Positions 2,704 through 25,159 of a stretch of DNA of 64,000 bases are shown here, piece by piece. A program made the position numbers and the translations under genes. Numbering within the stretch: position 1 is the stretch's first letter; each line of letters begins with the position of its first letter. This DNA comes from Lepidodermella squamata (lineage: Eukaryota > Animalia > Gastrotricha): NCBI GenBank assembly GCA_047495785.1, contig JBLDXI010000019.1, positions 3,348,001 to 3,412,000 of the forward strand, in the 5' to 3' direction. A model generated the notes under the pieces. That model searched no databases. It was given only the letters and a program-made list of their open reading frames with translations, and was not told the DNA's origin.

Positions 2704-4981
2704 ATGGTGTTATTTTGTAAAAATCTCCGAGAGAAAAACTGTAATATGAGTGGAAAAGCGATCAAATTAATTCAGCAAAACAAACTCCGCCTCTATTCAT
2801 AGCTCTGCGAAAAAATTTGGCAAAAGCAAGCCATGGCACGAAAGCGTAATTTATGGTTGCCATAATGCAGTCGTGAAAGGCCTGAATCAGGGCCACGGGA
2901 GTTCGTTATATTTTTTGTCATTGAAAGAATGCGCGAACGCATCACCATGACACTACGCTTCTGTTTACGTCATTTTGAAAAGCAAAAAAGTGGGCGCTAC
3001 GGTGGGGCATGTCTTGAATAGAGTGCGCTTCAGCAAACATCTAATCGTTTTTGGCCCTTCACGTGGAAACGAGGATAAACAGTAACATCTAGCCTGGCTA
3101 CGAGATGCAGGAAACCTTTAAACATTTCAAGGTAGATTCAGTGATAACTGGATCAAAAAAGTTTTGCGGACAATTGAAAGTTTATGATTTTATGTATCCT
3201 TTGCTTGCTTGGATGATACTTTGACGCCTGCTGTAGTGAGCAACTCTGAGCCGCCGCACGCACGCACGAAATCGATAGACACGCAGGTGATTTCATAACG
3301 CGCGTGCAACTTTGCAGGCGTGTTGCAAGGCAACCGCACGTGTCTTACCCTTGTGCGGTTAATTAATATTTTAGCGCGTGTTTTTCTACTCACTCATTCA
3401 TAGTATTTTTGTTTCAATCGTAGGTATATCTGATCGCTTTACCTCGTGATGCCTTGCGTTACATCCGGCTTCTGGAAAACTCGGCTAATCCATTATTTAA
3501 AAGCTGATTGGGTGATTCATAAGCTGTTACAGGCTTGAGGCTTTGAAGGAAAGTCACTTCAAATAGCGCCTTGCTGAGAAGGTGAAATTGAATAAGCCTT
3601 TACTTCCAGATTTTGCGGTTCAAAGATTAGGCTTCGATAATTGATAAAACGGCCCTATTGCTGATGTATGGTCGATCAAGAACACATTTGCGTTAATTTG
3701 ACTTCCACTCTTTGAGAATATCAGTAATCGAGTTTCAATGTAATGAATAATATGAGAATAAAAGCATCAATCTCATGACGAGAATAGAATACGGATTGTT
3801 CTTTTCTTCGGAATTAATCAATTTCATCAATAAGAAAACTAATTACCAATTCCATGAGATATTGGAATTTTCAATTCAGTCGCTTAATATAGCAACGACT
3901 ATTTAGCATGTCTCTGAAGCCATGATAAACACTGACCCGTGAAATAACGATTGTCCCCTGGTTTCAGCAAGAGAAAGCCTGTCAGATATGCCACCCTGAA
4001 TCTGCTAAATTAGAATGCAAGGAATCACCTACGGAATCTCTCTAAAAAGTTGCTGGCCAAGGCTATCGAAGAGACGCGGCTGAGGTAGGGTTTCTAGAAA
4101 AACCCTGGCTATCTCTCATGAAGACTTACATTATACGCCGAGAAGACCTTGAAGCTGTTAATCTGTGACCTGATGTGCTACGCAAATGTGGAAATCCCTC
4201 CAAATTTACACCCATCCCACTTTTCTGTTCAAGAGATTCTGGATCAATAATACCGGCCTTATTATTGTTTTTGCACAGTGGTAGTATTGACTGGGTGCGC
4301 TTTTGCATATTGACCATAGCTATCGAAATTTCGCGAATATTCCATCTATTCAACGAATCTGCATTCAATAGCGCAATGAGAGTAAGATGCTCAACTTCGG
4401 AGCGCTGACAACCTTTTTAAATGTGGAACATCCATCCATAGGTTGCAATCGCACTCTGTAAATATCGCATCAATCATCTCACCTACGCGGAGATGTTTTT
4501 AATTAACTTGTTACGTATGCTCAATTATCGCTCTAATAGCCCGCTTTGCCGTCGACTTACACATTTCCCGACCGTTTCAGGTGTATGACTAATTTTCATT
4601 AGCATTATTACGTCCTTCCTCAGGTAACACAAGGCCCGGAAATTTACCGAAAATTTTCCAACCGCGATAAACAAACAAGAGCAGATTTGATGGAAATTTA
4701 CGCATGAATACTCTCGTTTTTTATTAAACGTATATAGTAAGGAACGTAGTAAGCTGACTAGACGTCAGGCTCTTCAAAAACGGGCACCAAATCATCACCT
4801 CATTTAGAATTTATTCAGTTTGAAACTGTTTTGTTTTATTGCGTTCGTCCAATTTTATTAGAACATTCCCACGCCTGTGATGCGCAAATTGAGATTGATG
4901 AGGCGAATCGAACGTCGTTCATTCTTTGGTTTTTAGGGTCCGCTGTTTAAAACTTTGATTTTACACGGCATTTCATTAAGA

Positions 4982-5501
4982 ATGTCGACGCCGTTTCACA
5001 CAACTTTCAACGATTTGGAAATGTTCTTCAAAAATCAAGTAACCAACTGTAAATCTATGATTGAAAAGGTGGGTCTACCTTGGTCTTTATTGGTCTACCT
5101 TGGTCTACATTGGTAAATTTTTATATTTTCTAGAATTTGGAGATTCCTCTCTTAGATGCTGAATACATGTATCTCCAACATATGAACAAGGTCGTCCGAC
5201 AGCGAAAAACTTACCTGAAGTACTACAAGCTGAAAAGAGAGCATAGGAAAGCGCTGCAGGAGGCTTACAAAGCTAACAAACTATCGCCATCAGATGGGCG
5301 TCTGCATACGTTTGCAGAGCAGCGATTCGAACAATTTCGTCAAATGAATAACCAAAAGTACCGCGGCCTTGTGCCTGTTTCACCTGCGAAATGCCAGTCC
5401 GAAGCTATTATTCGACTATTAAGGTCTTTGCACATGTGAGCTGATGTCATGTAACAATTTTCTTGAATGAAAAAGTTTGGTTTCCCTATTTTAGATGGTG
5501 A
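4982..5501 (+). CDS. Unnamed helical family, copy 1 (131 aa; exons 4982-5068, 5134-5435, 5495-5501)
   Basis: GT-AG introns keep the frame. Shares the family pattern AxxxYxxxM...Y(L/I/V)K..L...H...RL..FA..F....N.KY.G and the C-terminal IW*. Confidence 0.8.
5071..5114 (+). repeat. 10-bp tandem repeat (TGGTCTACCT-like, ~4 copies) in intron 1 of copy 1
   Basis: gggtctacct tggtctttat tggtctacct tggtctacat tggt. Confidence 0.85.
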
Positions 5502-6554
5502 CGCCCTTTTCAAATCTCGTCGAATCTTCTCTTCATTATCTTCCTTAATTTCGCGATTGGAACTTCAACTGGATGATTTATGATTTTATATTAAAGACAT
5601 GCGATTCTTCAAAAGTTATGGCGCATAATAACTTCATTGTTCCATTTTTAGCAAGTGGCTGAATATAATTTCCCCCGGTGAAATCATCCTGACGGTTCCT
5701 GTCCAAGTATTTTCTATAAAATAAATTTTCAGTTGATAAAGGATAAAGGCTCCATGATCCAGTCTCGCGTTATCGGGATTCACGAATTTGAAAAGCGTTT
5801 CTACGCTCATATTTTGATCTCAGCAGCATCTAGCATTAAATTTCTCCAAATCCTCTTTAAACTCTTGCAAAAATATATTCATCATCAATCATATTAGAGC
5901 ATCAATTCGATATGTCGCGGTTGATCAGATATTCTTTCCAACTTTGAATCAGGTTGATCCATTTTTGGCAAAATAACGCTGATTTTCAGCAATCAGGTTT
6001 CATCTGAATTACAAAAACTGAATTTCCTCGCATGTCTTTCGAAGTTCGTAGTGTGCGTCGGTTCTTACAACGGTTCTTGCAAATTGACGAATGCATAGAT
6101 ACAACCAGTCTGTTAGAGTGCAGCTGTACCATAAGGCAAGTCCGGGTCTCTGAGCCCATAATGTCGCGGCTATGAGCCTCTACACATATTTCCCTGGCTA
6201 AATAGACGAGGACGTAATTGGTGATTAAAATGTGTCGATGAGGAATTTAACCGAGAAATCTCTGCGCATGTAGAAATGTAGGCCCTCAAGAACCACAAAC
6301 CGGAAATCGAACTTCTGCAGATATGAGTCTTTTCGCTAATCCTTCAAAAAGCGATGCTATCAATTTGACCAATCTACATTGTATGGGCTCCAACTCGTCT
6401 CCGACCATCGTAATCCGGATAATGAGCCTCAACCCCGGGACAGTACTTCGTAATGAAGTCACTCATTGCCAGGTTATCGCATGTGGTTCAAAAACCTGCA
6501 GTAGGAACTAATACCTCACAAGCATCGACAAGTTCACTATAATAAAAATAGGAA

Positions 6555-7164
6555 ATGCCGAAAAATCGAGACTCAAAGCAGGGAGTCCAGTATATGGTCT
6601 CAAGTCTTATGGTTTTCGTCACTCGGCAGCTGTTCTTCACAAAATCTGACGACAGCGGCCTTTCAGCTCGGCTAATCCAAGCCGAGTCTTATTATTCGAA
6701 CCAAATGGATAATTACATGCGGCTAAAATCAAGATACATCAAGCATGCTAAGCTGGAACATGTTCATCGGAGATCGATCGCTGTTGCGAAACGGATATAT
6801 GACATTCCGATGGAGGACAATCGGTTAGAGACATTCGCGCAAAAGCAATTCACGTGCTACGAGTCGATGAATATTCAGCGGTATGGCGGTTGCTCGTTGA
6901 TGTTCGGCAGGCCCAACCAACAGCTTACAACTAAAACTAAAGTACTACGCAAACTTAGAATGTGAGTTCTTTTCGCTTCTCATCTATCAAGGGTCGGTGA
7001 ACAAAAATCAAGTATTTTCAAAATTTCAATAGATATTTAGCAGTAAGCTTTGTCTGAATCAAATTTCAGGAAATATTTACTTCGGGGGATGAGTGTATTT
7101 GTCTGCATTTTTACTAATGATCTATATATAAAGCTATTATCTCTTTAATACTTGCAGATGGTGA
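6555..7164 (+). CDS. Unnamed helical family, copy 2 (exons 6555-6961, 7158-7164)
   Basis: QAESYYSNQMDNY...YIKHAKLEHVH...RLETFAQKQF...NIQRYGG; the splice AT|gtgag...ttgcag|ATGGTGA gives RIW*. Confidence 0.8.
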
Positions 7165-7690
7165 GGAGGCTTCGACTCAGTCCACTGTCCGTTCTCTGCG
7201 ATAACATCTGGTTCCTGTTCATTCCTCTATAATAGCCGTCGTGTTCAATTTGCGAATAAAAATCTGAGAGTTATGAAAGTTCGCGGTTCTGATCTAAGAA
7301 AAGGCGGGCGGATATTGCGGGCTTGAAGTTCCGCTAATAAAGCATGTGACTTTTGGCTTGATCGCATTGATCTTGACAGAGTGAATACCTCCACTATATG
7401 CCTTCATATTCTCTCAAACAATGATACTTCGCAGCTGCTAAATTAATTCCATCCTCATCATTCCAGATTATCTTCACAATTCCATTGCATATACGCAAGA
7501 AGCCCTCGAATATGTCATCATTCAAGAAAATTAAATAAAAATCAGTAGGAATATACGCACTTACCTTTGCGTGAAACGTAAACACAGCATTGCGTATTAG
7601 GCCTTTAAAACTTTATATGCTTGTTCTGGAAATTTCGACCTTTTGCTTATTTCCAACTTTTTTCCAACCATGGGAAGGTTTTTTCAAGGA

Positions 7691-8348
7691 ATGTCTTTCC
7701 GGTCGACGAGATCGGTGAATTCTATTGTCAGCGGCAGCCTTCGAAAAACAGCTTCTGATTGTCAGTCTATGATAGCTAACCTCAGCAACAATGCCAATAA
7801 AAGTGTCCAGCGAAGCGAATCTTTAAATAAAGGCAAGAAAGAGGCGAAGGAAAATCTGACAAGCATAATGGCTGGTTTTGGCATGTTCATCAACCGACAA
7901 GTGGCCACAGCTAAAGCTCTCGCGATTAAAGGCTCGATCACCCCTCAAATGGAGGCTGAATTTCACTATCTCGACCGAATGAACGCCTCGCTGCAGGCCG
8001 CTAACGGTTACGTCAAGCATTCGAAACTGATAGAAATCCATCGATCGATAGTTCTTGAGTGCAAGTTGAATTACAGGTAAGCTTTTCATGATGATAATTA
8101 GTCATAATTAATCGATTTTTTCGATGACTCAGATTACCTAACCGCTGCCCTGAGTTTGACGTGTACTGTGCGCAGCAGTTCCCTTTCTATGAGCGTATGA
8201 ACGACTTGCGCTATAAGGGCCCGTTCGGTTCGCCAGCCCACGCTATACGTGCGAAGCGAAAACTTCTTCGCAAAGTTCACATGTATGAGAAAATTTATTG
8301 ATTTTTGTCAGCAAAAGCTTAGGTCATTTTCTTTCTTGTAGATGGTAA
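7691..8348 (+). CDS. Unnamed helical family, copy 3, N-terminally extended (exons 7691-8076, 8133-8282, 8342-8348; start may be 7670)
   Basis: EAEFHYLDRM...YVKHSKLIEIH; exon 2 reads FDVYCAQQFPFYERMNDLRYKGPFGSPA...LLRKVH; the terminal splice gives IW*. Confidence 0.8.
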
Positions 8349-8658
8349 CGAAGTCGAAGAGTCCGGTTCAGGTTTCAAGTAATCCAAGTTAATCCCTGTT
8401 GACTGATGATCAAACTATGTGTTTCAGTATTTTTGCGCTCGCAGGACAAAATAAAAAGACACTTTTTCGTGCTAAAATCTTAGACGGAAATTCTGAAGGA
8501 AACTGAACAATTTGAAAGCGTTTAGGACCTTGATGTTTGTCTTCTAAAAGTTCACGATAAGGAAGCAGTTCTAAGAATTTTACTTGTTCGAATACACCGG
8601 AAGAAAATTTCTAGCAAATCTATCACACGAATGTTTCTCGCATCAAGCGAATTCAAGT

Positions 8659-9471
8659 TCAAAGCCAATCTGGATGAATGATGAAATCCGTTGAGGTTCG
8701 GCGAACATTGTTGAAATGTGAGCCACGGCTCAGTGGTAAAATAGTCGAGACCTGCGGGTCCTCAAAATTCACGCCCTGCCTATCAGTCCAGACCCGCCCA
8801 TCCGGCAGGCGGCGGAAATCACCCAAATGATGCCAAGACGCGTACTGCCAGCGGTTTTTCCTCGTATTTGGGGTTAGCAGCCGTAGGAATTTCAACTTAG
8901 CAGCATCAGTGTTATCTTCCTTGCTCTCTTTTTCAGTTTTGTAGGTGTACGACTGATTTTCAATAGCTTTGGCCGCAGAGGGTTGCTTCTCCCGAGCCCA
9001 TTGCGGGTTTTGCAGTTTATCCATAAATTCTTTACCAGGCGCTGGCGTGGAGGGTGGACAGCCATTCCCGCCTAGCCAAGGCATTTTCGAGTCACTTGTG
9101 GGGGCGACTTGCTCCTTGGCCTTAGCTTGGTTTGTATACCATTTCAGCTCACGTTGCTGCTGTTGAGATTTCGGCGGAGTCTGTTGAGCGATTCTAGCCC
9201 CACATGTCGGACAGCATGCGTCTCCTGGCGGCCAGCAAATCGGTTGCTGCATTTGCTGGGTGAAGGAGTTAGGCCGTCTCCACGGGGCAGCAGCTGGTAT
9301 CTCCATTTTCTCGAATGTAACCGGGCAACTGCAAAATGCGCACTTCTTCCACTTCGCATATTGGGCTGATGAAAGAAAAATGCATTGTTGTATCGAATAA
9401 TGAACACAAATCAAACCATTTTTCAGCCGCTTGAGGTCTTTTTTAATGCCGGCTTCAAGAACTTCGTTCAT
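8659..9471 (-). CDS. Intronless hypothetical protein with CxxC motifs and Q/P-rich linker
   Basis: ~270-codon ORF from the first ATG (9471); motifs CAFCSC and CCPTCG; no family recognised. Confidence 0.55.
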   Translation of the reverse strand: MNEVLEAGIKKDLKRLKNGLICVHYSIQQCIFLSSAQYAKWKKCAFCSCPVTFEKMEIPAAAPWRRPNSFTQQMQQPICWPPGDACCPTCGARIAQQTPPKSQQQQRELKWYTNQAKAKEQVAPTSDSKMPWLGGNGCPPSTPAPGKEFMDKLQNPQWAREKQPSAAKAIENQSYTYKTEKESKEDNTDAAKLKFLRLLTPNTRKNRWQYASWHHLGDFRRLPDGRVWTDRQGVNFEDPQVSTILPLSRGSHFNNVRRTSTDFIIHPDWL

Positions 9472-11172
9472 GGTTAGTGGTCTGATAAAAAAATGAACTG
9501 GCTTATAATTCAAGCAGAATACAAGCAGAATCTTGTTTTCATCCGAACGTCTTTGAGAGCGTTTTCAGGGCGTGAAGTCTTGCCATGTCACCGTGGACAC
9601 GAGCGTTTTTGCTTTTCTATCTCAGAATTCTCAAAGGCGGCCTTTATGTCTTTATTTCTTTTGATGTTTATTTCTTTTTAATGGATAAATTTTTTTGCGG
9701 TAAGGTTTCGACACGCCCAACTGCGTCATAGTGCAGTTCAATAGGGTCGAGAAATCGTTTCACCTAATTAGCCACTGAAGCGAATAATGACGGCTTTCCT
9801 GAATTCTCAAGTAAATAAAGCAAATCTCGAATTATATCAAACTCATCGAATCCAAGTGAGCAATAATCCGAGCTAATGGCTGAGTTTCTCTAGGTTCTTC
9901 AATTTCGATTTTCAATGATATCGACTTCTAGCAAATGTCACCCTATTTCAGAGACGAGCATGTTGTAAAGATGAGTCTCCGTGACCTCGATACATTTTCA
10001 TTTCAGTGATTCAAAAAAATAATCCAAGCATAGCTTTTACTTTGATTAAAACTCCTACAAAATGTTCACTCACATGAGGCGAAAAGCCTATTAACCACGA
10101 ACCCGTGAATGAATATGGCGTCTGAAAGTAATAATTAATTAATTTAAACGAAGCATTAAATTCGCTTCGACAAATGAAGTTCCCAGCCAAATCCTGGATG
10201 ATCCGTCCTAATCTTCAAAAAATGCTTTATAAACAGCCCCGGGCGTGTGTAATCAACACATGCCACGTTTGCTAATCCCCAGAAAATTACAACAACCACA
10301 ATAGTAAGCTTTTGGCTCATTCACTATCGTGTCTGTTTATCTAAAAACGAAACATGTTTGATTTTCATCTGAAATGACATGGGTAGTGCACCAATTATTT
10401 ATATAAGTTTCCTAATAAATTAACCGTGACCAACTACACACAAGTTTCTGTCTCTTATAGTTTCATTCAACATACCAGAAGCTAATCTTCGTCGCACAAT
10501 TTTTTCCTCTAAATTTCTAGTTTTCCCTCGCTTGATGATTTCCAGAGTGTGAAGTAATCAGTAGGCGGCTGGAGAGGAAGGCGGAATTTAATAATTAGCA
10601 GGCAATTCAAGGATATCCAGGAAGTAAAGTGGCTGCGTTATTGCGTCAAAGTTCATCGAAAAGTGATATAACGTCTTGATTTTTCTAGACTAATAGCCTT
10701 TCGTAATTTTTTATTTCGCAAAAAACAACCGATAGTTACTAGAATGATCCCACTATTTCTTTCCGCCCATGATGCATTCGCTCTGCGGAGAGCGGCGGAA
10801 AATGTAGAGTCATATGATGTGATTTATCGCCGCTGCGGGCAATGTGAGTCATCATCAGAAGCTCCAGACGCTTCTATTTACCTTGCTCGTAGTGGCGGCC
10901 AGCGCAATTTGCTTCTGCGTCACCGGCCATCCGTGATCGCGAAGCAAATCGCATGATACTGGATTCGAGTGGCACATTAGTCGCGAGTAGGCTCTCTTAC
11001 TTCTGACACGGGGGGCAGGGCTTCCTGTTCGTGAGACAGGCGATATCCGCTGCGAATCAACGCTGATTGCCCATTAAAGAAAATCACTCGATTATGTTTT
11101 TCTCGCTCACATGATAATAATATACTTAACTTGATGATGTTTTTTCGCTCTAGATTTTTTTCCGAGAACAAA

Positions 11173-11626
11173 ATGACTAACGGGAGTCTGCACCAGGCTG
11201 TCAACGATTTGGCAGTGTTCCTATCTAAACAAATTCAGTCCTGCAAAACGCTGGTCGAGGACAACCTGGAATGGGAAGTTGTCCATGGCCAACAGCTTTA
11301 CAACCAGCGAATGACAGCCTATCTCACAGCGAATAAAGGGAAATACATCAAATACAGCGATTTAAAGGCCGAGCACCTTAGGGCGATCGCAGAGGCGAAG
11401 AAGCAAGCGAAAGTTGCGAACAACGACCAAAGGCTGAAAAAATTCGCCGACGAGCAATTCGTCGAATTTCGTAAGGCAAACGATGCGAAATATAAAGGAT
11501 TTTTCATGTCACCCGCCAAACCTTCGCCTCGCATCGTCGAACAAGCCTGTCACAAACTAAGAATGTTAGTTTTGAATTTTTTGAATTTTTCCTGGATTTA
11601 TTTGATTTTTTTCATCCAGATGGTGA
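11173..11626 (+). CDS. Unnamed helical family, copy 4 (exons 11173-11564, 11620-11626)
   Basis: LYNQRMTAY...YIKYSDLKAEH...RLKKFADEQF...NDAKYKGFFMSPA; the splice AT|gttag...ccag|ATGGTGA gives RIW*. Confidence 0.8.
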
Positions 11627-11968
11627 TTTTTGTTGATGGCATCTCTCACCTCACTCGTTTTGTCTCTCATTGAAACACCGGCTAAGTACGGCTCATATTG
11701 TGGATGAATAAACTCTGGTCAATTTATGTTGTCGCGTTTCTCACACCTACGAAACTTAATCCCGATGCCTTTTATCGTGTGTATGACATATCGTAAACCC
11801 GCCAACGCTTATTATTGAAATGTGTTAACAAAGCTGATGATTTTCTATTATATTTTGAAACTGAAAAATAAAACCTTACGGAAGAGACGCATGGCTAATT
11901 TTGGCTAATGAATCGCTCGAGTTGACAACAGCGTGAATTTCGGACATTTTTTATCTGTCTCAAATATT

Positions 11969-12247
11969 ATGCCGTATCTCCTAATCGAATCAACAGGGTT
12001 GAGATACCCACAGACACTGATTGGCGGCCATGAATCGGATGCAGCCTTGATGGCAGAATTAGGGGCCACTCGCGAGTCGACCTTCTTCGACGCGCCCTAT
12101 GTCTGCAATGAAGTCCCGGTTGTAGTTCTGGATAAATTGGAACAACTCGGCTACGTCGTTGTGTCACACAATGTTTGTCAATCGCTCGAAATTCCCGGAA
12201 AGCACCTATTTACGTGGACTCTTCATAAAAATCTGGACAAGAGCTAA
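11969..12247 (+). CDS. GCHFR: GTP cyclohydrolase I feedback regulatory protein (GFRP)-like, copy 1
   Basis: MPYLLI...TLIGGHESDAALMAELGA...PVVVLDKLEQLGYVVVS...WTLHK matches the GFRP pattern MPYLLIS...SDPELM..LGA...PRIVLDKLE..GFRVLS...WCLHK. Confidence 0.8.
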   Translation: MPYLLIESTGLRYPQTLIGGHESDAALMAELGATRESTFFDAPYVCNEVPVVVLDKLEQLGYVVVSHNVCQSLEIPGKHLFTWTLHKNLDKS

Positions 12248-12979
12248 TGATATTGTCACCGCTAATTGGAGGAAGCTGCATGTTGCAATTATATGTTTTG
12301 TCTTGACTGATGAGCGAATAAAATACATATCGACTTTTAATAGGGTGTGTTGTTATTCTTGCATTTTACTCCAATTCTTAGAGGAAGGCGGAATGAAAAA
12401 GGAAACATTGCGACTGAGAAAACTTCGAAATACCTAGGAATAAATTTATATAACACACCGAAAGAATTCTTCAATGGGGCTTTATAGACAAGTTCTTGTC
12501 ACTGCTTTCTCAGAAAAAATGAGCAGGTTTACGCAGGAAAATGACTAACATTCTATTTGCTTGTCACTATTCCAACGCTATGATGTTTTCACGTCAAAAT
12601 GGAACGCTATCTACCATCTGCCGCAACAAATTTGTGGAATATTTATCTTCGGGCCCAGCCCTTCAAGTTTGACCTCCTAATTGAGCTTATCATCCATCAT
12701 CCCTCTTCCTCTCATCAAATAACCAGGAAAAATGCGCAAGTGAAGCCCACACTGCGAACACAACGGAATTGTGTGGGTTGTGGGTTGTGTGGGTCTTTAC
12801 GATAAGATGCGATGCTAACTTTAACCTCAACTCGTTATCTCATGTATCGTATCTGAATACCTTTACAAATACCTTTGTTACACAACCCCATCCTACGACT
12901 CTCCCTCAAAAACCCCTTAAAAGGTCTATCACTTCACAATCAACTGCTGTGTTTTGCATTTTCTTCTTTGAAAGTTGAA

Positions 12980-13267
12980 ATGCCGCATCTGCTGGTCATT
13001 TGCTATACTGAGTCATCGATAATGCATGGGCCAACTACGATTACTGGTGGTGAAGGAACTAATTCAACATTAGGAATGGACCTTCGCAAAGTCGTAGGTG
13101 CGAAGCGGGACGATTGGCAATCAAAGGGAATCTATGAATCAACTGAACCGCCTGTTGTGATTTTAGACAAGCTCGAGAGCCTTGGCTACAACGTGACTTC
13201 ACAAACAAGTACGCAATATGCTGATGGCGGTTCTCGCTACATCTGGACGCTGCAGAAAAAGATCTGA
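12980..13267 (+). CDS. GFRP-like, copy 2
   Basis: MPHLLVI...GPTTITG...VGAKR...PPVVILDKLESLGYNVTS...WTLQK. Confidence 0.75.
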   Translation: MPHLLVICYTESSIMHGPTTITGGEGTNSTLGMDLRKVVGAKRDDWQSKGIYESTEPPVVILDKLESLGYNVTSQTSTQYADGGSRYIWTLQKKI

Positions 13268-13597
13268 GATTTTTGAAGAATTCGTAAACCTTGTTTGAAG
13301 CATTTCCTTCAATTCGCATGCATTGCGACAATGAAATAGTCGACGGAATTTTAGTATTGGAACATCGATTTAACATTCAACGCAATAAATGTCATTGTTT
13401 CGCATTTACTGCCAAATGATATAGTGCCGGGTGCCAGGTGGCGAGTAGCGAGTAAGACTAATTTAGCTGCGATAAGATTACAATATTTGGCAGCTTGATA
13501 TCGGGCAGAAATTTGTGAGATAAAGCGACGATGCCACGTTTTACTATGAAAGTCTAACTTACACAAGCAGAATTTAGTCCCCGAGTAATTCTTGCTG

Positions 13598-13857
13598 ATG
13601 CCTTACGTCGTTGTTAAAGCTTTTAGCTTGAATATCCTGAATTCACCTACGTCCAAGCTGAGCATCTAGTCGGGGATTTACTATACGACAACGACTTCCG
13701 CGAGGAAAGCGATGAATCGTTCATGAGTATGAACAACCCTGTAGCTGTTCTAAATAATTTGGAGAAATATGGTTATCGTGTAATATCTTATCAAATATGC
13801 CCAAATGCCAAGGCTGGACCGGGTCATTACCTATATACCTGGACTCTTCAGAAATGA
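13598..13857 (+). pseudogene. GFRP-like, copy 3, with a single -1 frameshift near 13627 (pseudogene or sequence error)
   Basis: MPYVVVKAFS in one frame continues as LEYPEFT...NNPVAVLNNLEKYGYRVISY...YTWTLQK* in the -1 frame; absent from the ORF track. Confidence 0.7.
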
Positions 13858-14760
13858 ATTCATAAATGAAATTTTGTTGTTTAAAGCTTTAAACAAGTTG
13901 TTCCGAATAAAATATGTACGCAGCTACACGAAGTTCATTATCAGTTGAACTTGGCTGATGAATATTTGATGGACCGAGGCTGGACATTACACACACCTAT
14001 ACTTGGCCTCTTCAGTAACGGCTGGATCTTCATAGTTGATTTTCTGTTAATTCGCGAATTAGATGTACTGGAAATCGTTCAATTTTCCTGTCTTAGGCAA
14101 GCCTAAAAGGAACTAAGACTAATTTGACGAGATGTTTGAAAGCATTTTTCAAGCTTTAGTCTGAAAAGTTGAAGTAGTATTGTCCGAAGTCCGGCGAAGC
14201 TAATTTCCTCACTTGAAAGAATTCATTTTTTACGAATCATCAATTCTCCGATCGCTCGACGCAACAGGATTTCGTCATTCTATTGACATCATCTTGCAGT
14301 CACATGACGAAACAAGCTGAATTTCCTGCAGAAGTTTGATCGTCAACAAAGAATGCTACTAAAAAGTACTAAAACTCTTGTGCAATATTCAATTCCCAGA
14401 TCGTAACATGAGTCGTATTTTACATTTTTTACGTGCGAGGTCCCATAGCTACAATAAATGTACGAGAAATAATGCGATATTATTACGGCTTGGGAATATA
14501 ATTAAGCGCGCCGGCCATTGCGCCATGCGAGAAAAATCCGATCGCCAGTGCTGCGACCGTCCATCTAGTGGATACTCAGTCGCATGCATTTTTTAATTGA
14601 ACGGAAGCCGACGCCATGGCAATACGGCCTTGTTTACACTGCCTTCTCGGTGCACGAATGGCGAGTTGAGACGGACCTACACCTTAGCAATCAATATATA
14701 CGTCAGTTGAAAAAATAACGCATCGCTAAGATGACTCATTGACTCGGCTACTCTACGGCT

Positions 14761-14769
14761 TATATAAAA
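14761..14769 (+). promoter_or_regulatory. TATA box upstream of family copy 5
   Basis: TATATAAAA ~60 nt before the ATG at 14824; a TGACTCA (AP-1-like) site lies at ~14732. Confidence 0.5.
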
Positions 14770-14823
14770 CCGGCGAATCAGCGACTTTTTCACAGATTAT
14801 TTCAAAACAATATCCGAGTGATT

Positions 14824-15331
14824 ATGGTCTCAACTCCGGCAGCTGCACTGGCTTTTAGCGAAATTTTTGATAACTTCTCGAATATCGGCCTCTTTTGGAC
14901 TAAGAAGGTCAACTGGGCCCGGCAAATGTGGCACACTGATTCCTCAACCCCAGCTGGAGCGCTAGCTCATGCTCAGTGTTATTACGCTAATAGAATGGAC
15001 GAATTTGTTGCGGAACGTTCGAAACAATGCAAGTACGTCAAGTACTACCGTTTGAAGGCTCAGCATAGGCAGACGATTAAGGAAGCATCATCCACCTACA
15101 ACTTGGGCACACCTGAGCGGTCGCGCTTCGATATGTTCGCGAAAAAGCTGTTTGCGTACTACCTTGCGGTCAACAACGCTCGTTACAACGGATTTTTCTT
15201 CAAACCCTCCGATAAAACCGGCCCAAGTGCGGATATCAAGATCAAGGTCGTTAGGCGTCTCAGAATGTAAGATTTTCCAAATATTTCCTCGAGCAAAAAT
15301 CTTACGCATTCATTTTTAATTCAGATTGTGA
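14824..15331 (+). CDS. Unnamed helical family, copy 5 (exons 14824-15266, 15325-15331)
   Basis: AQCYYANRMDEF...YVKYYRLKAQH...RFDMFAKKLF...NNARYNGFF; the splice AT|gtaag...ttcag|ATTGTGA gives RIL*. Confidence 0.8.
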
Positions 15332-16464
15332 TTGTTTTCCCGATAATTTGCCTCCAAAACTCGACTTGTTTTTCAATTTCGAACACCGGCAGCTCAGTGG
15401 GCTCGGTTCTTGCCTCTTTTTCTGGTTCAACTGCATCATCATTAATCCAAGCAATAAAAACGATATTTATCTTGACAGCTTTAATCCATTATTTATGACA
15501 ATTTTTGTACCATTGATGATTCCTCGGTCGCTAATCTCGTTTTTCATTATTAGGGACGAGAATAGCATTCGATATTTCAATAAAGTCCTTGAAATCATGT
15601 TTTTTCCACTTAAAAAGCTTATGAGTATCATTTTTGAAACGCGGAACCCTAAACTTCAGTGCTACCGTTCCTCACAGGCGATATCGTATAGTCCAAGAAA
15701 TTTGAACAAAAGCGAGCGGATAATCATTTTGTTGAACGCCGGAGCCCTTCGATTCATCTCTTCTCCGAATATCGAATCCCACTATCGGATATTATATTGG
15801 TAGAAAGTGTCTATTTCTGTTTCAGTTCCGACATTTTCTAGCTCTGGAAACATTTGGCCGAGTGAATTTTTCGAATATCATTTTCAGATACCCATTAGTG
15901 ATTCATCAAACGTGCCTCGGCAGCTTTCTACCCTATCGCAGATCCCAGGCCAGCTCGAAAAAATATCACTCCCCAGAGACAGGAGCTGATTAACACAGGT
16001 GACTAATGTATGCGTATGCCAATTCTCGACCAACCCTAGATCGATGATTGTGCACTGAGAGAGCGAGTGAGTGAGTAAGCATGCATGAGTAAACAATCGA
16101 GGGGCGCCGCGCCTGTAAATGCTACGGAAGTCAAGCCTAAATTTGAAAATAAATTTTTTCCACTTAACAGGCCGATACACCGGAAAACACACATTACGCC
16201 GTGTGACCATGAGAACCTAGACGCGATGAATAAATCATCAGTTGCCAGGGTTGCGCTAATAATAGCTGCGTGTTTACCTTACCATGCGTCATATCGCGGA
16301 TCGCTATTTCGCTTCTTGCCTTTGCTCAAGACGTAAAAAAACGCACTTGTAAATCTTGGTTTCTAAGAAACGACTACAAATCGATATTACGCTACATTTT
16401 CGATATTTACACACCCCGTTCGTACCTTGGCAACGGTAGTGGAAATGATTCACGGCCCTGAAGC

Positions 16465-16472
16465 TATATAAA
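16465..16472 (+). promoter_or_regulatory. TATA box upstream of family copy 6
   Basis: TATATAAA ~75 nt before the ATG at 16542. Confidence 0.45.
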
Positions 16473-16541
16473 GAGAGTCAAGAATAATTTATTTCAAAAA
16501 TCCAAGCATATTTTGCAATTTGCTCTGAAACACATTTTAAC

Positions 16542-16955
16542 ATGGAAACCGACCTACTTCTGTACAACAAGGCCGAAATCGAGCAGGCCGTTGCCCATCT
16601 AGCCAAACAGCTCGCCAACTGTCGTTCAATGCTGTCGAACTCTCGAGGAATCACAGCTCCTTTAATCGGCGCTGAAAATTTCTACCTAGACCGGATGGAA
16701 TGCTACGTCAAAGCCCATGATCGGTACTTGAAGTACCACAAGCTTCGGAAGGTTCACAAGGAAGCGATCAGCGATGCGAAACTGCTGTTCAGGATCGACC
16801 CTCTCGATCGTCGGCTGGATCTGTTTGCCGAGGAGCACTTTGACTACTACGCTTACATTAATAACTCAAAATATCAGGGAATTTTCGGCTCTCCAGCTCG
16901 CAGACGAACGTCTCCTGTCATTACCCGACTTCTCCGCACAACCCGAATTTGGTGA
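16542..16955 (+). CDS. Unnamed helical family, copy 6 (intronless, 137 aa)
   Basis: GAENFYLDRMECY...YLKYHKLRKVH...RLDLFAEEHF...NNSKYQGIFGSPA...TRIW*, encoded without the terminal intron. Confidence 0.85.
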   Translation: METDLLLYNKAEIEQAVAHLAKQLANCRSMLSNSRGITAPLIGAENFYLDRMECYVKAHDRYLKYHKLRKVHKEAISDAKLLFRIDPLDRRLDLFAEEHFDYYAYINNSKYQGIFGSPARRRTSPVITRLLRTTRIW

Positions 16956-18319
16956 AAATTTACCTTACTAAAATCAATGATCCTCCAATTCGTTTCGAGT
17001 CGAATGAAAGGCGCTATGTTCCACTGGAAAATAATGACTTTTTTACGCCGATGTTTTAAAAGCATCAAAAATTGTTATTTACAGCCAGCTATGCTTGTTC
17101 CGCTTCGCCTTATTTTATGTCTTTTGATACCCAGATATGTATAATAAAGAAATGGATTCTTGATTGATAATTGTTCATATTATGATCAAATTATGACCAA
17201 AGCTAAAAGTTTGGCACAGGGTAATTTGGGTAATCAAGAAGGTTTAAAACTAAATTTCAAGGGTGACGGTGCAATTTAAATCGTTGCTTTTCTTCTAAAT
17301 CGGACTAGCATTACACCATGGCGATGTCCAATAAATTTGTGAGCATATATTTATTACCATTATTCACTCACAAGTTAGTAAACAGTGTGACGTGCAACAT
17401 TTCTTTGTCTGATATTAGCACAAGTATTATCATATCTTGAACTTGTCGCACGAGATCAGGAAGTCGGAAATCGGAACGAGACGAGATGGGTGGAGATTAC
17501 TAAATCGAGTGCGTAGTATAGTGCGGTTCGTTTGTATTTGCCGTTTTATGCAGAAAAGGAAAAAAGGCGGTCTTAAGGAAAATGCGATATTTGCAATGAA
17601 TGAATCATGAATCATCGTCTCAGAATCGAAACAAATGAAGTTTTTGTGCATAATTGCAAGGAACATTCGAGAGAAATTGAAACTGAATCAACCATCAGCT
17701 TCAGCTGCAATATTAATCCAGCAGGATGCGCGATCTTTCTGCGGCTAAATTGTCATTTCTTTGTCCGGCCTGGCCGAGCTGGGGGGGATACGCCTGATAG
17801 TCGCACATTGCTTATCCAGGCACATTGTTTAAGGCGTATTTAGAAGTAAATACTGTACATTTTCCGGTAAATTTACCTGGTTAAAGATTGAGCGTTATCG
17901 TCTAGACACTAGATTCGGGACTTGTCCTTCGTCGAATAACATTTTGAATGACGGATTAAACAGAAAACGCCCACCTACAGCGCAATTATGAACCAGGCAA
18001 GGACATTTCGATATGTCATCATTATTCATGCATCGACAACCAAGAGGTTCATTCAGATTTAACGAGAAAGCGGAACGAAGCCAGTCGTCGCACTTTGGTT
18101 CAACATTGCCGCATCAAATTTCACCTAAACCACGCGTGGGATAAAAACTTGAAGCATGCTCAGCTGTACCTAACCTACGCCTCACGTACTAACACATCAA
18201 TGCATTTAGGCTAATTTTTAACGTTACTAGAAAATCGATTCTCTCTACATTTTAGATTAGACAGCGTAAATAAATGCGCATTTCACATCGCCGTTAATTC
18301 GAACAAGTCTAAAGTAAGC

Positions 18320-19697
18320 ATGAGATCTCACAACGAAGCTGGGCACCGGTGTAAAGTTTGCGACAAAGTTGTTACGCCACGCAAGAATTACCAACCCGGC
18401 ATCTGCGAGGCTTGTCAGAAGTTTTTCCGCCGCCACTGTGGAGCCCATGATAAGCTAGAATGCAACCACGTTGACGCAAGAACCAACCAAAAATTCGACC
18501 TCAGGTCATTCTGTCCGAAATGTCGATTTGACAAATGCCTTCATGTCGGCATGCAAAGTAACGAAAGGTCGAATTTATTGTTTATGATTGCTTAGTTTTG
18601 TTTTATTTCGCAGGCAAGTTTTTCAAATCCCCGGGTGAAGAATTCATACCACCCGATTCATCTACGAAAAACAAAGATCAGCCCGCTAAAAAGAAGGAAA
18701 AGTCGAATACGCGAAAGCGAAAAATTCAAGATCCTAACTTGGAGACTTCATTAGTTCCCGAGCCGATTTTGTACGATGGCGCGGTGGTTGAGAACGTGCT
18801 AAAAAACTCAATGCAAGCAATAACTATTCTTCATGATCTTCAATTCGTGAGTGAATTTTCGGGTTTTATATCAACGATGAATTTAGGTTTCTTTCAGTTG
18901 CCTATGACCACATTGAGCCAGACTTATGGCAACGATATTTCAGACGATATGTTCATGTTAGTTTCGATGATTCAGCTAAGAGAGCTTGAGCGAATTGCTA
19001 GTCATTTCACTGGTTTCATGATGAGTAAGCCCGGCAATTTTGTGCTCGTTTTCGCTATTGTACGTTCATTACATAGATTTATTTGACATCCCGCCCAATG
19101 AGATGCCGTCTCTAAGGGAAACGAGATGGCGGCAAATTACTTTGACCTACTGTGCCCTCCCAGGATCGAAATGCACCTTGACAGTGGATGATAAGTGCGA
19201 ATCGAGGTGGTTGAGCTTTTTCCCAGAAATGAAGGTAAAACCGCCTTTACATTCGATTTTACCGCTTTATTTTTCTTGTCTTTTACCAGGAAGCAAAAAT
19301 TGCCAATGACAAGCTGAAAGCTGCTGTCGAAAAGTGGTCACCTACTTTCATGGAAACAGCTCTATATTCTGCTCTTCTTTTCTTCAACGGTATAAAGTTT
19401 CAGCATGTTCAAACAGTGACCTTGATGTTTTTCTGCTTCTCCACAGCCAAAGTTGCTCAACCTCACAGTAAAGTGTTCAAAGTGAGGCAAGCCCTACTGA
19501 CAGCTTTCAATCTTGTATGCGCAAAATACTCGGATCGCGACAAGGAAAACACGCTCGCTCATTTGAAAACTATGGACCAATTGCTGAAGGAGAACATCGA
19601 AGCTGTGGCTACTGGCGGGGAAGCAGCTGCACGTCGCGTGGCTCACATGTACAATCGTCGTGAAGATTACTTGGTTGAATTAGCTTTTGATTCCTGA
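18320..19697 (+). CDS. Divergent nuclear hormone receptor (exons 18320-18557, 18614-18846, 18898-19024, 19077-19234, 19290-19389, 19447-19697)
   Basis: DNA-binding domain CKVCD...CEACQKFFRR...CPKCRFDKCLHVGM; ligand-binding-domain-like helix ETALYSALLFFNA; five GT-AG introns preserve the frame. Confidence 0.85.
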
Positions 19698-20419
19698 AAA
19701 GAGACTCGGCTCTAGCAATGAACACTTTCTTAATTTGTTTGAATTGATAACAGACGCGTATTGCGCGTGTCCAGATATCACTCGAATCGCTTTCAAATTT
19801 AATTTCGATGATGAGCAGGGATGAAGGTCTCCAATAATGAATGTTGTCAGCATTTCACATATCTATAGATTAGATTAGAGATTTGACTCGCACCTGGAAA
19901 ATATGAGATTGGAATTCGGGAAATTCACGACGAACATTATTTTCTAGAGGCTTTACTCAATCTAAAATAAAGAACCTGGTTTGTCAAACTACTACAGGAG
20001 AAAATTCGAGTCCCGAAAACCGCGGCATAGCAAAATCATAACAATTCAAATAAACCATACAAAATTTAAAGGGCAGTTTTAAATCGATTTAAATCCTTCG
20101 AACTGATCGAATCTTTCCGTGCCCTGTGAACCTTTTTGCAGCATGGAGAAGTATACGTGGAGTTTTTCGCGAATCTCGATTTAGCCATTGGCAATGCTTT
20201 TGAAAGATGAAATGCTATGCGAAATGCACTGATTATCTAGAGGCAAGCGATTTACTAGATCAACTGCCCTCAACTGAGTAGCCGGTGCTAATCATCCGGC
20301 TTTGTACACTTTCTCAAGCACTTCCCTTGATTAAATTTACAGTAGCCGCCCGAGCATTTTCGCTGATTAAGATATGTTTCATCTCTGAGTTCATCATTCA
20401 TCTGACATCCATCATCAAC

Positions 20420-22840
20420 ATGATTGAAAAGCGACAAGAGTGGCTCGATGCCGCTGTAGCTTTGCATGACTACCAACTCTCCAAATTCGCGAAAGACAAT
20501 TCGCTGGGCGATGTTGGCAGTTTCGAATCCGCCCCTTGGTTCGTCCTGGTTGGAGATGAGCTCAGCGAAAAAATCCGTCTCATCGAATCACTTGCTGAGA
20601 AGCCTACTGTGGACTCCCTAAAACTACAACAATGCAACGCCTTTATCGACACTACTCTACAACGACCAGCAGTGTTCATTTTAAGAAAGGGTGAACGTCA
20701 CTATGTATCGATCTGCGAAGAAGCCAAGTCGCTAGGCGACGAGATATCAGTAGCCAAAGCGTCGAGTTTTACGGATTTAATTGATAACCCAAAATTGAAT
20801 GTTCTCAGTGAGAAGCCTGTTTTCGTCAAAGTATCCGGGAAAGACTGCATTGGAGCGACTTTTGTCATAAATCCTCACTCTGAGATGCCGATATTAGAGG
20901 GCGGAACTTTTGAATCATGCATCGCTAGCAAATGCCCGATTCTCATGTTGAAATACCCGCCGACTGAATGGCAGGCGAGACGAATCGATTTCGAGCAGTA
21001 TCTCGAAGATTTGTTGTACGACTACTACGGCGAGATGAGGTCGATAGGCACTGAACGGGCTATTTTGGTCGTTCATGGACTAGAATCCGGAAAAACTTTC
21101 CTCAGGTCGAAACATCTCGACCATTTTCTTCATGTTGCTAAGACAGTAGGTTTAGACTCACGTCGAATCGTTTTCGCATCTTTGAAAGGTGATCCCGCCA
21201 CGGATTTGGCGAAAACAATGGAGATCACTCATCCGGAACGATATCACATAGGCATGGAAGCCTTAGTAGCCCTTCTTGAAAACGAATTAATTGAATCAAT
21301 TATGAAGTCTGTCAATGCTGTTTCAGCTATGGCTAACTCTCAATTCCGGAAACTGATAAAGGTTGACCCGGAGCGGTGTCCGGATTCGTTTGACAAGGAC
21401 GAGAGTTACTATGAAAGAATGGCCGAGGACTACCTTGAACTTATCTATGAGGCCGTTCAGGTTTGTGCTGAGAATGATAGATCGAGGCTTGAGCTTTGCT
21501 TAAAGCGATCCCCAACAGTTCGAGTCGATGAACATGGCGCGATTGAGGAAATCATGTCAGCGATTTGCTACAACTTCAGTGAAGAAATGTTCAATTTCCC
21601 GTCAAAAAGTTTGTTACTGACTACCCTTCTAGGAGATTTAGAGCAGAAAAAGCTTGAATTGGGGCCGTTTCAAGGCAGTAATCGACTGATTTCTCAGATG
21701 AGCAAGTATCTATCAGGGAAAGAAGCTGTTTCACGGCTCTTATCCCTATCTGGCTATAGCTTACTCGAAAACTTTCGACCGATCGACTTCTCATCGGATG
21801 AAATCTTGGCCATGGGAGAAATCGTACCCGGGAGAGGTTTCATCTGCTCGAAAGCTGTCGAAAAGATGATAGACCAACGCCGCCCTGACATTGAATATAT
21901 TGAAAGCCTGGTTCAATGGTGTGTTTGGCTATTTGTTCGACAGGCCCCGCTAATCTGTGAAAGGATCCGGTTGATCGCTAAGTTGGATATCGACTCTGAG
22001 TTTCCGAGACTGGCTGACAGATTTGATGATACAATTTCCGAGGTCTGTAAAGCCTTTTTCGAGCAGAAGGCGCAAAACTTGATAACCGAAGCCGCGAAAA
22101 TGATCAGATTTCGCTATGATATCGCTAGATTCGATGATTTAGTCCTAACGACACATCTTTTAGGCTATTCGTGCTTCAAACCTACAACTTACGATGCTCC
22201 CAGGCAGAAGCGGATGTTTAATAGGACTTTAAGTATCTCTGTCAACCTTTCCGACCAACCTTTTGACGCTTTTCAAATGGAATCACCGTCTAGTTCTTTT
22301 GAAGAGTGCGTTTTCTCATCAGCTGGCAAGTGCGATGTCAATTTCGATGCGGTAACTGCTAATCAAGTCGACCACTACAGAGAGGCGATCAATAGTGCCG
22401 CTGAGGCATTTGCTAGGTACAAATACGGCTCTGTGATCGCTGATATATGCGCACTGATTGAACACGAATTCTCCGCAGCTTCAATAGCTGATTCTTTCGC
22501 CGAAATCAGGCGTAGAGTCTCTGTTAAAAATGCCCTCTGCAGCTATGCAAAATGCATGTTCAAAGTTGCGAGGCTTCGTTACAACCGTTTGGCGCTGGAA
22601 AAATGCCGCTGGGCTGAAGTGACCCTCCGAAATCTTGTTGATTTAGTTCTGAAGCTGGAAAATTGCCGGAGCGGGCTTGGCTCTCCCGCACCGAAAAGCA
22701 GCAATGAAATGAAGCAAACGGCTCGAGCTGTTCTCAAGGAACTTCAGGAGGATGTGGGAATTCTAGAAGAATACGTGCAAGAGGACATTTTAATGGACGG
22801 CTGGGGCACGCAATACATAGCTATGACTCCGCATGAATGA
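20420..22840 (+). CDS. Intronless dynamin-superfamily-like protein with degenerate GTPase motifs (~806 aa)
   Basis: APWFVLVGDELSEKIRLIESL (G1 position), TTLQRPAVFIL (G2), SEKPVFVKVSGKDCIGATFVINP (G3) and HIGMEALVALLENEL (end of G domain), followed by a long helical stalk-like region. First ATG at 20420. Confidence 0.6.
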   Translation: MIEKRQEWLDAAVALHDYQLSKFAKDNSLGDVGSFESAPWFVLVGDELSEKIRLIESLAEKPTVDSLKLQQCNAFIDTTLQRPAVFILRKGERHYVSICEEAKSLGDEISVAKASSFTDLIDNPKLNVLSEKPVFVKVSGKDCIGATFVINPHSEMPILEGGTFESCIASKCPILMLKYPPTEWQARRIDFEQYLEDLLYDYYGEMRSIGTERAILVVHGLESGKTFLRSKHLDHFLHVAKTVGLDSRRIVFASLKGDPATDLAKTMEITHPERYHIGMEALVALLENELIESIMKSVNAVSAMANSQFRKLIKVDPERCPDSFDKDESYYERMAEDYLELIYEAVQVCAENDRSRLELCLKRSPTVRVDEHGAIEEIMSAICYNFSEEMFNFPSKSLLLTTLLGDLEQKKLELGPFQGSNRLISQMSKYLSGKEAVSRLLSLSGYSLLENFRPIDFSSDEILAMGEIVPGRGFICSKAVEKMIDQRRPDIEYIESLVQWCVWLFVRQAPLICERIRLIAKLDIDSEFPRLADRFDDTISEVCKAFFEQKAQNLITEAAKMIRFRYDIARFDDLVLTTHLLGYSCFKPTTYDAPRQKRMFNRTLSISVNLSDQPFDAFQMESPSSSFEECVFSSAGKCDVNFDAVTANQVDHYREAINSAAEAFARYKYGSVIADICALIEHEFSAASIADSFAEIRRRVSVKNALCSYAKCMFKVARLRYNRLALEKCRWAEVTLRNLVDLVLKLENCRSGLGSPAPKSSNEMKQTARAVLKELQEDVGILEEYVQEDILMDGWGTQYIAMTPHE

Positions 22841-24432: not shown

Positions 24433-24984
24433 ACGAATACGAATACGAATACGAATACGAATGATTTTATTTGACTTCCACTCGACTAAGGCGTCTATAC
24501 CCTTTCGGGTTTTGTGGAAGGCGAAGGAAGGCAAAATTTAAGAAAAAACGCCCACCCCCGCAGTTAGCAATTTGCTTTTACCATAAAATTCATAATTTTC
24601 CAATTCTGAGACCGTTGTTTGCCATTCATCTCTATTTAATGCAGTTAATTCTGTGGCGTGCCAGTCCACGTCTTCTACTATTATCTCAATCGAGTTTGAC
24701 CCATCTTTCTTGGGTCGTCCTCGAGAGCCATCGGTTTTTTTCCTAATAGTTGTTTTTGATGTGAGGCCTACTTTAATTAGGCTTCTTTCTACGCATTTTA
24801 ACCAATAAATTTGAGGTTTTCCTACTGGCCTGACCCAACCTTCTGGAGTCTGCCATCTATATATGTCGTACACTGGGCCGGGTTCGAGAGGCTTTCCGTC
24901 TTTGTCTACATAGGTTTGCATTCTTATTATGTGACCAAGATAATTGAGGCGTTGTTTTTCTATTAATCTACTCACTTCTATCAC
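24433..24984 (-). mobile_element. 5'-truncated RTE-like non-LTR retrotransposon 3' end with (ATTCGT)5 tail
   Basis: RLNYLGHIIRM...RPVGKPQIYW...NRDEW is the typical RTE ORF C-terminus; microsatellite tail at 24433-24462. Confidence 0.8.
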
Positions 24985-25159
24985 GTAAGCAATTACCAAT
25001 ATCATACAGATTTTCCGATTCTTTTGGAGCCCTTGAAATTGAGAAAACTTCCAAAGATAGAATTCCCAGCAAGTATATGGTGATAAAGCTGGGGAAATGA
25101 AGTCGGGTAACATTCATCGAAGATGAGAACTAAGAAGAATAAAATTTGACGGCCATTCT
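24985..25159. repeat. 175-bp inverted repeat, right arm
   Basis: Inverted copy of 23489-23663, directly abutting the LINE 5' truncation point. Confidence 0.95.

Follow-up and report, generated by a model that had tools for sequence, protein, structure and literature searches.

Atlastin drives membrane fusion in the endoplasmic reticulum (ER) by the swing of a three-helix bundle against its GTPase (G) domain. The bundle swings on a hinge and docks on the G domains in the course of GTP-driven crossover dimerisation, and mutations in the bundle region cause hereditary spastic paraplegia. Soluble pieces of the protein can also be made: cytATL, an engineered G domain plus three-helix bundle, has a dominant-negative effect on ER fusion, which it inhibits via G-domain dimerisation, the R232Q mutant being inert (PMC3857478). 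A natural atlastin paralog without membrane segments, BmAtlastin-n, occurs in Bombyx mori, where it is cytoplasmic and tied to antiviral defence (PMC4926086). In the literature we found no description of a natural protein consisting of the atlastin bundle alone. Here we describe a tandem family of six small genes, the predicted proteins of which resemble just the hinge and bundle of atlastin. They lie within a stretch of 64,000 nucleotides from the gastrotrich Lepidodermella squamata (positions 3,348,001 to 3,412,000 of contig JBLDXI010000019.1, assembly GCA_047495785.1), which we call the window and to which the positions below refer. The window is eukaryotic in character: its introns are short and of the GT..AG type, it encodes a nuclear-receptor zinc finger, and its GC content is about 42%.

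Six diverged paralogs

In a scan of the window in all six frames, a family hidden Markov model (HMM) matches six loci only, with E-values from 1e-17 to 6e-54, in addition to which exon 1 of copy 1 is matched at E 0.003. All six lie on the forward strand, starting at 4982, 6555, 7691, 11173, 14824 and 16542 (copies 1 to 6). Both the listing of open reading frames (ORFs) and the raw sequence thus bear out a first-pass annotation of the same DNA, which had proposed six same-strand paralogs at these starts, and the reading frames are intact. The spliced proteins are 131, 137, 180, 132, 149 and 137 residues long, and as their pairwise identity is only 22–37%, the earlier description of the paralogs as highly diverged was correct.

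The motifs that had been read from the translations are present in all six proteins when these are aligned. The common pattern is A-x3-Y-x3-M ... Y(I/L/V)K-x3-L-x3-H ... F-x6-N-x3-Y-x-G ... P, in which conservation over 11 alignment rows reaches 90% or more at the fixed positions of Y, M, Y, K, L, H, F, N, Y, G and P. The supposed ending in I(W/L) is also real, being spliced together in copies 1–5 and uninterrupted in copy 6. Members of the family have 125–180 residues and a net charge of +7 to +16.

Predicted structure and comparison with atlastin

We modelled copies 6 and 4 with AlphaFold2, obtaining a mean predicted local distance difference test (pLDDT) of 79.7 and 79.4, respectively. Both models begin with an N-terminal helix and a short hinge that is poorly determined; three helices at pLDDT above 90 follow (residues 39–58, 65–82 and 91–111), and then a basic tail helix of low confidence, so the core of each is the three-helix bundle that had been suspected from the motifs. 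When the models are compared to the PDB with Foldseek, human atlastin-1 and atlastin-3 account for the top 4 matches of copy 6 and the top 17 of copy 4, with probabilities of up to 0.99 over 81–108 columns at 17–24% identity (E 0.2–0.6). Re-alignment of the Foldseek candidates with VIA gave atlastin chains Z-scores of 8.2–9.9 (root-mean-square deviation 2.3–2.9 over 69–85 residues, 22–24% identity), against 5.8 for the best candidate that is not an atlastin.

An exhaustive, structure-only VIA search of 48,161 representative chains ranks RNF112, an atlastin/GBP-like GTPase, first for copy 6 (Z 7.8), with atlastin-1 at rank 6 and Sey1p at rank 26. For copy 4, atlastin-1 comes second behind a designed protein, with Sey1p at rank 10 and Drosophila atlastin at rank 37. 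The identity within these structural alignments is 21–25% for the atlastins and typically 1–15% for the other matches; among the 50 matches listed for copy 4 the two highest values belong to Drosophila atlastin (25%) and atlastin-1 (21%). A shape search of the ESM-Atlas with copy 6 puts a cluster containing atlastin-1 first (TM 0.59, with 122 of 137 residues aligned) and a cluster carrying GBP_C second (TM 0.51).

At the level of sequence, a family profile compared to 177,635 PDB sequences scores fly atlastin and human atlastin-1 at 12–13 bits (E 0.8–1.4). The likeness to atlastin claimed by the first-pass annotation therefore stands for the fold, where atlastin-1 and atlastin-3 are the best PDB matches for two paralogs, but not for sequence similarity taken alone, which is not significant. 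Once atlastin has been nominated by structure, its per-sequence p comes to about 5e-6. HMMER aligns the invariant Y, M, L and H of the family, and its (Y/F)L pair, with their counterparts in the human and fly atlastins, and the same holds for the hinge motif (C/P)(K/R)SM(L/I). The models thus support a stand-alone, atlastin-like three-helix bundle, and common ancestry with the hinge plus bundle of atlastin is probable.

The closest counterpart is the middle domain (about residues 347–440) and hinge of atlastin-1, atlastin-3 and Drosophila atlastin, which have the same helix order and lengths, align with the family at the conserved Y, M, (F/Y)L, L and H and at the hinge motif xKSM(L/I), and run into the membrane hairpin at about the point where the family proteins end. 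The family differs in lacking a GTPase domain, a transmembrane hairpin and any recognisable counterpart of the atlastin C-terminal helix, in a third helix that is about 8 residues shorter, in being far more basic with its own conserved (I/V/L)W C-terminus, and in a sequence similarity that lies below significance. The stalk bundles of RNF112 (ZNF179), Sey1p/RHD3 and the GBP helical domains (GBP_C), all of the same superfamily, are also among the top structural matches, though at an identity of only 5–9%; all of these proteins carry a G domain, and the Pfam GBP_C profile does not match the family. Like cytATL, which is a soluble atlastin piece without a membrane anchor that works in trans on full-length atlastin and is thus the nearest precedent for the action proposed below, the family is soluble, but cytATL has a G domain and is a laboratory construct rather than a natural gene. 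BmAtlastin-n shows that soluble proteins derived from atlastin do evolve, though it has kept the GTPase domain where the family keeps only hinge and bundle. In this family a known domain takes a new, free-standing form.

The tail, which is conserved, basic and hydrophobic and ends in (I/V/L)W, is predicted to be helical at a pLDDT of about 60. It had been suggested to bind membranes, and its basic and hydrophobic character agrees with this, but its hydrophobic moment (0.17–0.50) does not exceed that of shuffled tails. An amphipathic tail helix is thus unsupported, and binding of the tail to membranes is possible but unsupported.

Expression and stand-alone status

Sequencing run X1 carries the SMART oligo and poly-T loose ends and is therefore complementary DNA (cDNA). 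One of its contigs covers 11219–11871 and splices 11564 to 11620 in copy 4 (depth 209), and contigs covering 14846–15586 splice 15266 to 15325 in copy 5 (depth 40), in each case with GT..AG and as predicted. With a further contig at 16674–16807 from the transcript of copy 6, transcription is seen for copies 4–6, and for the stretch containing copies 1–3 (4950–8450) the run holds 32% of sampled words. Judged by the cDNA contigs, expression is above that of the neighbouring genes.

None of the X1 contigs of copies 4–6 has a joint entering from an upstream exon. Every gene opens with an ATG of its own and has an in-frame stop 6–141 nucleotides upstream of it, a TATATAA stands 63 nucleotides 5′ of the ATG in copy 5 and 77 nucleotides in copy 6, and the intergenic gaps, as short as 0.5–1.2 kb, leave too little space to accommodate a G domain. 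We found no P-loop motif of the form G-x4-GK[ST] in any forward-strand frame between about 2.3 and 20 kb. Running all six proteins through Pfam with hmmscan at E ≤ 1 gave no GBP, no GBP_C (PF02841) and nothing else relevant, and no member has a transmembrane segment, the highest Kyte-Doolittle means over 19 residues being 0.33–1.11. Pfam, the P-loop scan and hydropathy thus agree with the earlier statement that the proteins have neither a GTPase nor a transmembrane domain, and the upstream stops, the lack of a P-loop exon and the lack of upstream cDNA joints speak against upstream exons encoding a GTPase. The six are real, expressed, stand-alone protein-coding genes. With neither a G domain nor a membrane hairpin, the family does not qualify as an atlastin.

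Conservation and distribution

When a family profile is searched against 1.84 billion representative proteins at E ≤ 1e-3, only three clusters come back (E 7e-29 to 9e-23). All of them are family members, and they stem from a small number of metagenome assemblies (ENA or Logan) of one diverged relative. The proteins are orthologs of copy 4 (P0003, 45% identical), copy 5 (P0001, 42%) and copy 6 (P0002, 52%). Copy 6 matched nothing in a word-indexed search of 5.8 billion proteins, no relatives came up in JGI metagenome contigs, which were scanned once with a single protein and once with an alignment of three sequences, and a search of a language-model atlas gave no usable match.

Intact reading frames of the family number six here and four in the relative. 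In the family tree copies 4 and 5 each pair with their ortholog from the relative (support 95/90 and 98/95), copy 1 is sister to the copy 4 pair (97/95), and copy 3 forms the longest branch. The relative keeps the gene order NHL, copy 4 ortholog, GTP cyclohydrolase I feedback regulatory protein (GFRP), and its copy 4 ortholog has the same terminal intron as the gene described here; the distance between the two species can be gauged from GFRP, 64% identical, and from the NHL-repeat neighbour, 31% identical. The presence of these orthologs and the partly shared gene order imply that at least three to four paralog lineages are older than the species split. For the ortholog pairs the proportion of nonsynonymous differences (pN) is 0.34–0.39 as against 0.76–0.95 for synonymous ones (pS), and because the synonymous sites are saturated the ratio of the corresponding rates (dN/dS) is not quantifiable. 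Given the orthologs, the gene order and intron that have been kept, the values of pN and pS and the few database matches, the family is old within its lineage, constrained and very narrowly distributed.

Two GFRP paralogs lie between copies 4 and 5 on the forward strand, at 11933–12247 (Pfam E 1e-12) and 12875–13267 (E 7e-8). It is the first of these that is 64% identical to the single GFRP of the relative; the second is 36% identical to it and has an N-terminal extension. The pairing of copy 4 ortholog and GFRP is kept in four metagenome contigs (L002–L005). A DNA run from 2024 (X2) spans 11100–17000 of the window at about 1.5% divergence, with small indels that are mostly intergenic, and comes from another strain, or another haplotype, of this species.

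Gene models and the terminal intron

Copies 1–5 share a phase-2 intron of 55–196 nucleotides (AT/GT...AG/A TGG TGA, with slashes at the splice sites), which splits the last residues and leaves 4 coding bases in the final exon. It lies at 5436–5494, 6962–7157, 8283–8341, 11565–11619 and 15267–15324 in copies 1 to 5, and in the copy 4 ortholog of the relative just after 4386 of contig L002; copy 6 and the relative's orthologs of copies 5 and 6 have lost it. With a donor of ATG TAA or ATG TGA, a protein read by a naive ORF call, or made from a transcript that retains the intron, stops at M rather than finishing in I-W. The final exon of copy 5 is A TTG TGA, so that its C-terminal residue is L.

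The gene models, all on the forward strand, are as follows. Copy 1 (131 residues; 4982–5068, 5134–5435 and 5495–5501, the last being A TGG TGA) is modelled from sequence with GT..AG introns, including an extra one at 5069–5133; exon 2 matches the family HMM at E 4e-42, to set beside E 0.003 for exon 1. Copy 2 (137 residues; 6555–6961 and 7158–7164; HMM E 9e-53) has the longest terminal intron of the family, 196 nucleotides, with a predicted acceptor that was picked by family conservation; another acceptor near 7069 would change the tail. Copy 3 (180 residues; 7691–8076, 8133–8282 and 8342–8348) matches the HMM with its two main exons (E 5e-30 and 1e-17) and has an extra intron at 8077–8132, and an ATG at 7670 could possibly add 7 residues. 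Its first part (7691–7900) encodes an N-terminal extension of about 50 residues containing a second N-terminal helix motif, DCQSMI (compare NCKSMI and NCRSML), which by its sequence looks like a partial internal duplication. Copy 4 (132 residues; 11173–11564 and 11620–11626) rests on its cDNA contig, with a transcript that continues to about 11871, and the protein could be 13 residues longer if it began at one of two in-frame ATGs (11134 and 11137). Copy 5 (149 residues, ending RIL; 14824–15266 and 15325–15331) also follows its cDNA contigs. Copy 6 (137 residues, ending RIW; 16542–16955) has no intron and is taken from the ORF listing, the cDNA contig and the AlphaFold2 model.

Neighbouring genes

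Directly after the array lies a nuclear hormone receptor gene (18320–19086, forward strand) with a C4 zinc finger (zf-C4, E 4e-10), and the exon that follows the zinc finger is likely to encode the ligand-binding part. An intronless ORF of 851 residues (20285–22840, forward strand) begins 3.3 kb downstream of copy 6. It had been read as a dead dynamin, but there is no Pfam match and PDB sequences match it at chance level only (p38 kinase, E 0.3–1), and we therefore do not link it to the family. Between copies 3 and 4 an ORF of 284 residues on the reverse strand (8659–9513) is Cys-rich (CAFCSCP...CCPTCG) and Q/P-rich, with no Pfam match. A further reverse-strand ORF (24538–25113) contains the motif LNYLGHIIRM, which is typical of the C-terminal part of reverse transcriptases from retrotransposons without long terminal repeats, and is probably a retroelement fragment.

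Discussion

We give an even chance to the overall account that this is a lineage-restricted, soluble and basic family which derives from an atlastin-like GTPase gene and acts in trans on GTPases of the atlastin/GBP type. The ancestral gene would have lost its G domain and membrane hairpin and then been duplicated in tandem before the split from the distant relative, leaving a product made up of N-terminal helix, short hinge, atlastin-type three-helix bundle and basic-hydrophobic tail. Such a free hinge-plus-bundle may bind atlastin/GBP-type GTPases in one of two ways, by taking the place on the G domain that receives the GTPase's own bundle, or bundle to bundle as in the crossover dimer. The conformational stroke used for membrane tethering and fusion would thereby be tuned or blocked, and separate paralogs may serve separate members of an expanded GTPase repertoire. 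The trans-regulatory function, taken on its own, is a tentative proposal, as is the role of dominant-negative regulator or decoy that the first-pass annotation had suggested. A more specific version is doubtful: here the family would be an escaped lever arm, a set of natural trans-acting regulators in which each paralog pairs with one member of the animal's expanded, in part immune-like, set of atlastin/GBP-type GTPases and either keeps it off self membranes or times its power stroke, in the way that IRG-type immune GTPases of vertebrates are controlled by dedicated regulator paralogs. Such control of membrane remodellers of the dynamin superfamily would be of a kind not known before.

Several observations weigh against descent from atlastin and action on its relatives. 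Sequence similarity alone is at the level of noise (about 13 bits, E about 1), adding three orthologs left the score unimproved, and two clostridial toxin helices scored slightly better; chance matches reach such levels, as seen with p38 kinase for the neighbouring ORF. The Foldseek E-values are only 0.2–0.6. Three-helix bundles are common, and in the exhaustive VIA search many unrelated ones reach Z 6–7.8, within one Z unit of the matches named above. The ESM-Atlas search with the model of copy 4 gave AraC-type and phage proteins at TM ≤ 0.45 and no atlastin, and the Pfam GBP_C profile matches none of the six proteins. Moreover, the two models are not fully independent tests, because they have the family-conserved residues in common. 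With regard to function, cytATL needs G-domain dimerisation, so that a family without a G domain would need another contact, and the high positive charge could instead mean binding to nucleic acid or acidic lipid.

Of the alternatives, one accepts the derivation from the atlastin hinge and bundle but holds that the proteins now work independently of GTPases, for example as basic peripheral-membrane or scaffold proteins, with the conserved (I/V/L)W C-terminus and the SP motif as functional handles. It would account for the strongly basic character of all members (+7 to +16) and their conserved basic-hydrophobic tail, for the retention of several paralog lineages over a long time and for expression exceeding that of neighbouring genes, and it fits with a known atlastin inhibitor whose mechanism requires the G domain. 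However, the residues conserved in the family are those conserved in atlastin, which suggests that an atlastin-type contact has been retained, and the amphipathicity of the tail is not above that of shuffled tails. On balance we think this unlikely.

No better placed, in our estimation, is the alternative that this is a lineage-specific orphan family whose bundle came to look like that of atlastin by convergence, with no shared ancestry or functional link. Short bundles of helices occur widely, and this explanation draws on the sequence and Foldseek E-values given above, on the designed and unrelated bundles at similar Z in the exhaustive search, and on the Atlas search with copy 4 and the language-model atlas search, neither of which pointed to atlastin. 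Against it, atlastin comes out on top by three methods and for two paralogs; the Z-score on re-alignment is 9.9 as against at most 5.8, and the structural identity to atlastins exceeds that to other proteins. The match also takes in the hinge and the N-terminal helix, over an alignment of 122 residues, and the per-sequence p is small once structure has nominated atlastin. As the gene models are sequence-based, it might also be proposed that the loci are degraded remnants of genes, or else that they are 3′ exons belonging to larger atlastin/GBP genes that escaped notice. This is largely refuted, and very improbable, given ten intact frames in two species, pN well below pS, upstream stops, TATA boxes, gaps with no room for a G domain, the lack of a P-loop exon and spliced cDNA contigs that show only the predicted joints.

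If the family does bind GTPases of the atlastin/GBP type, its members would be ready-made probes or inhibitors of the crossover step that have already been tested by evolution. They would also provide an example of regulation by domain escape. Even if the function proves to be a different one, an internal mechanical domain would have turned into an independent, duplicating gene family, one that has been retained across a deep divergence in a little-studied phylum.

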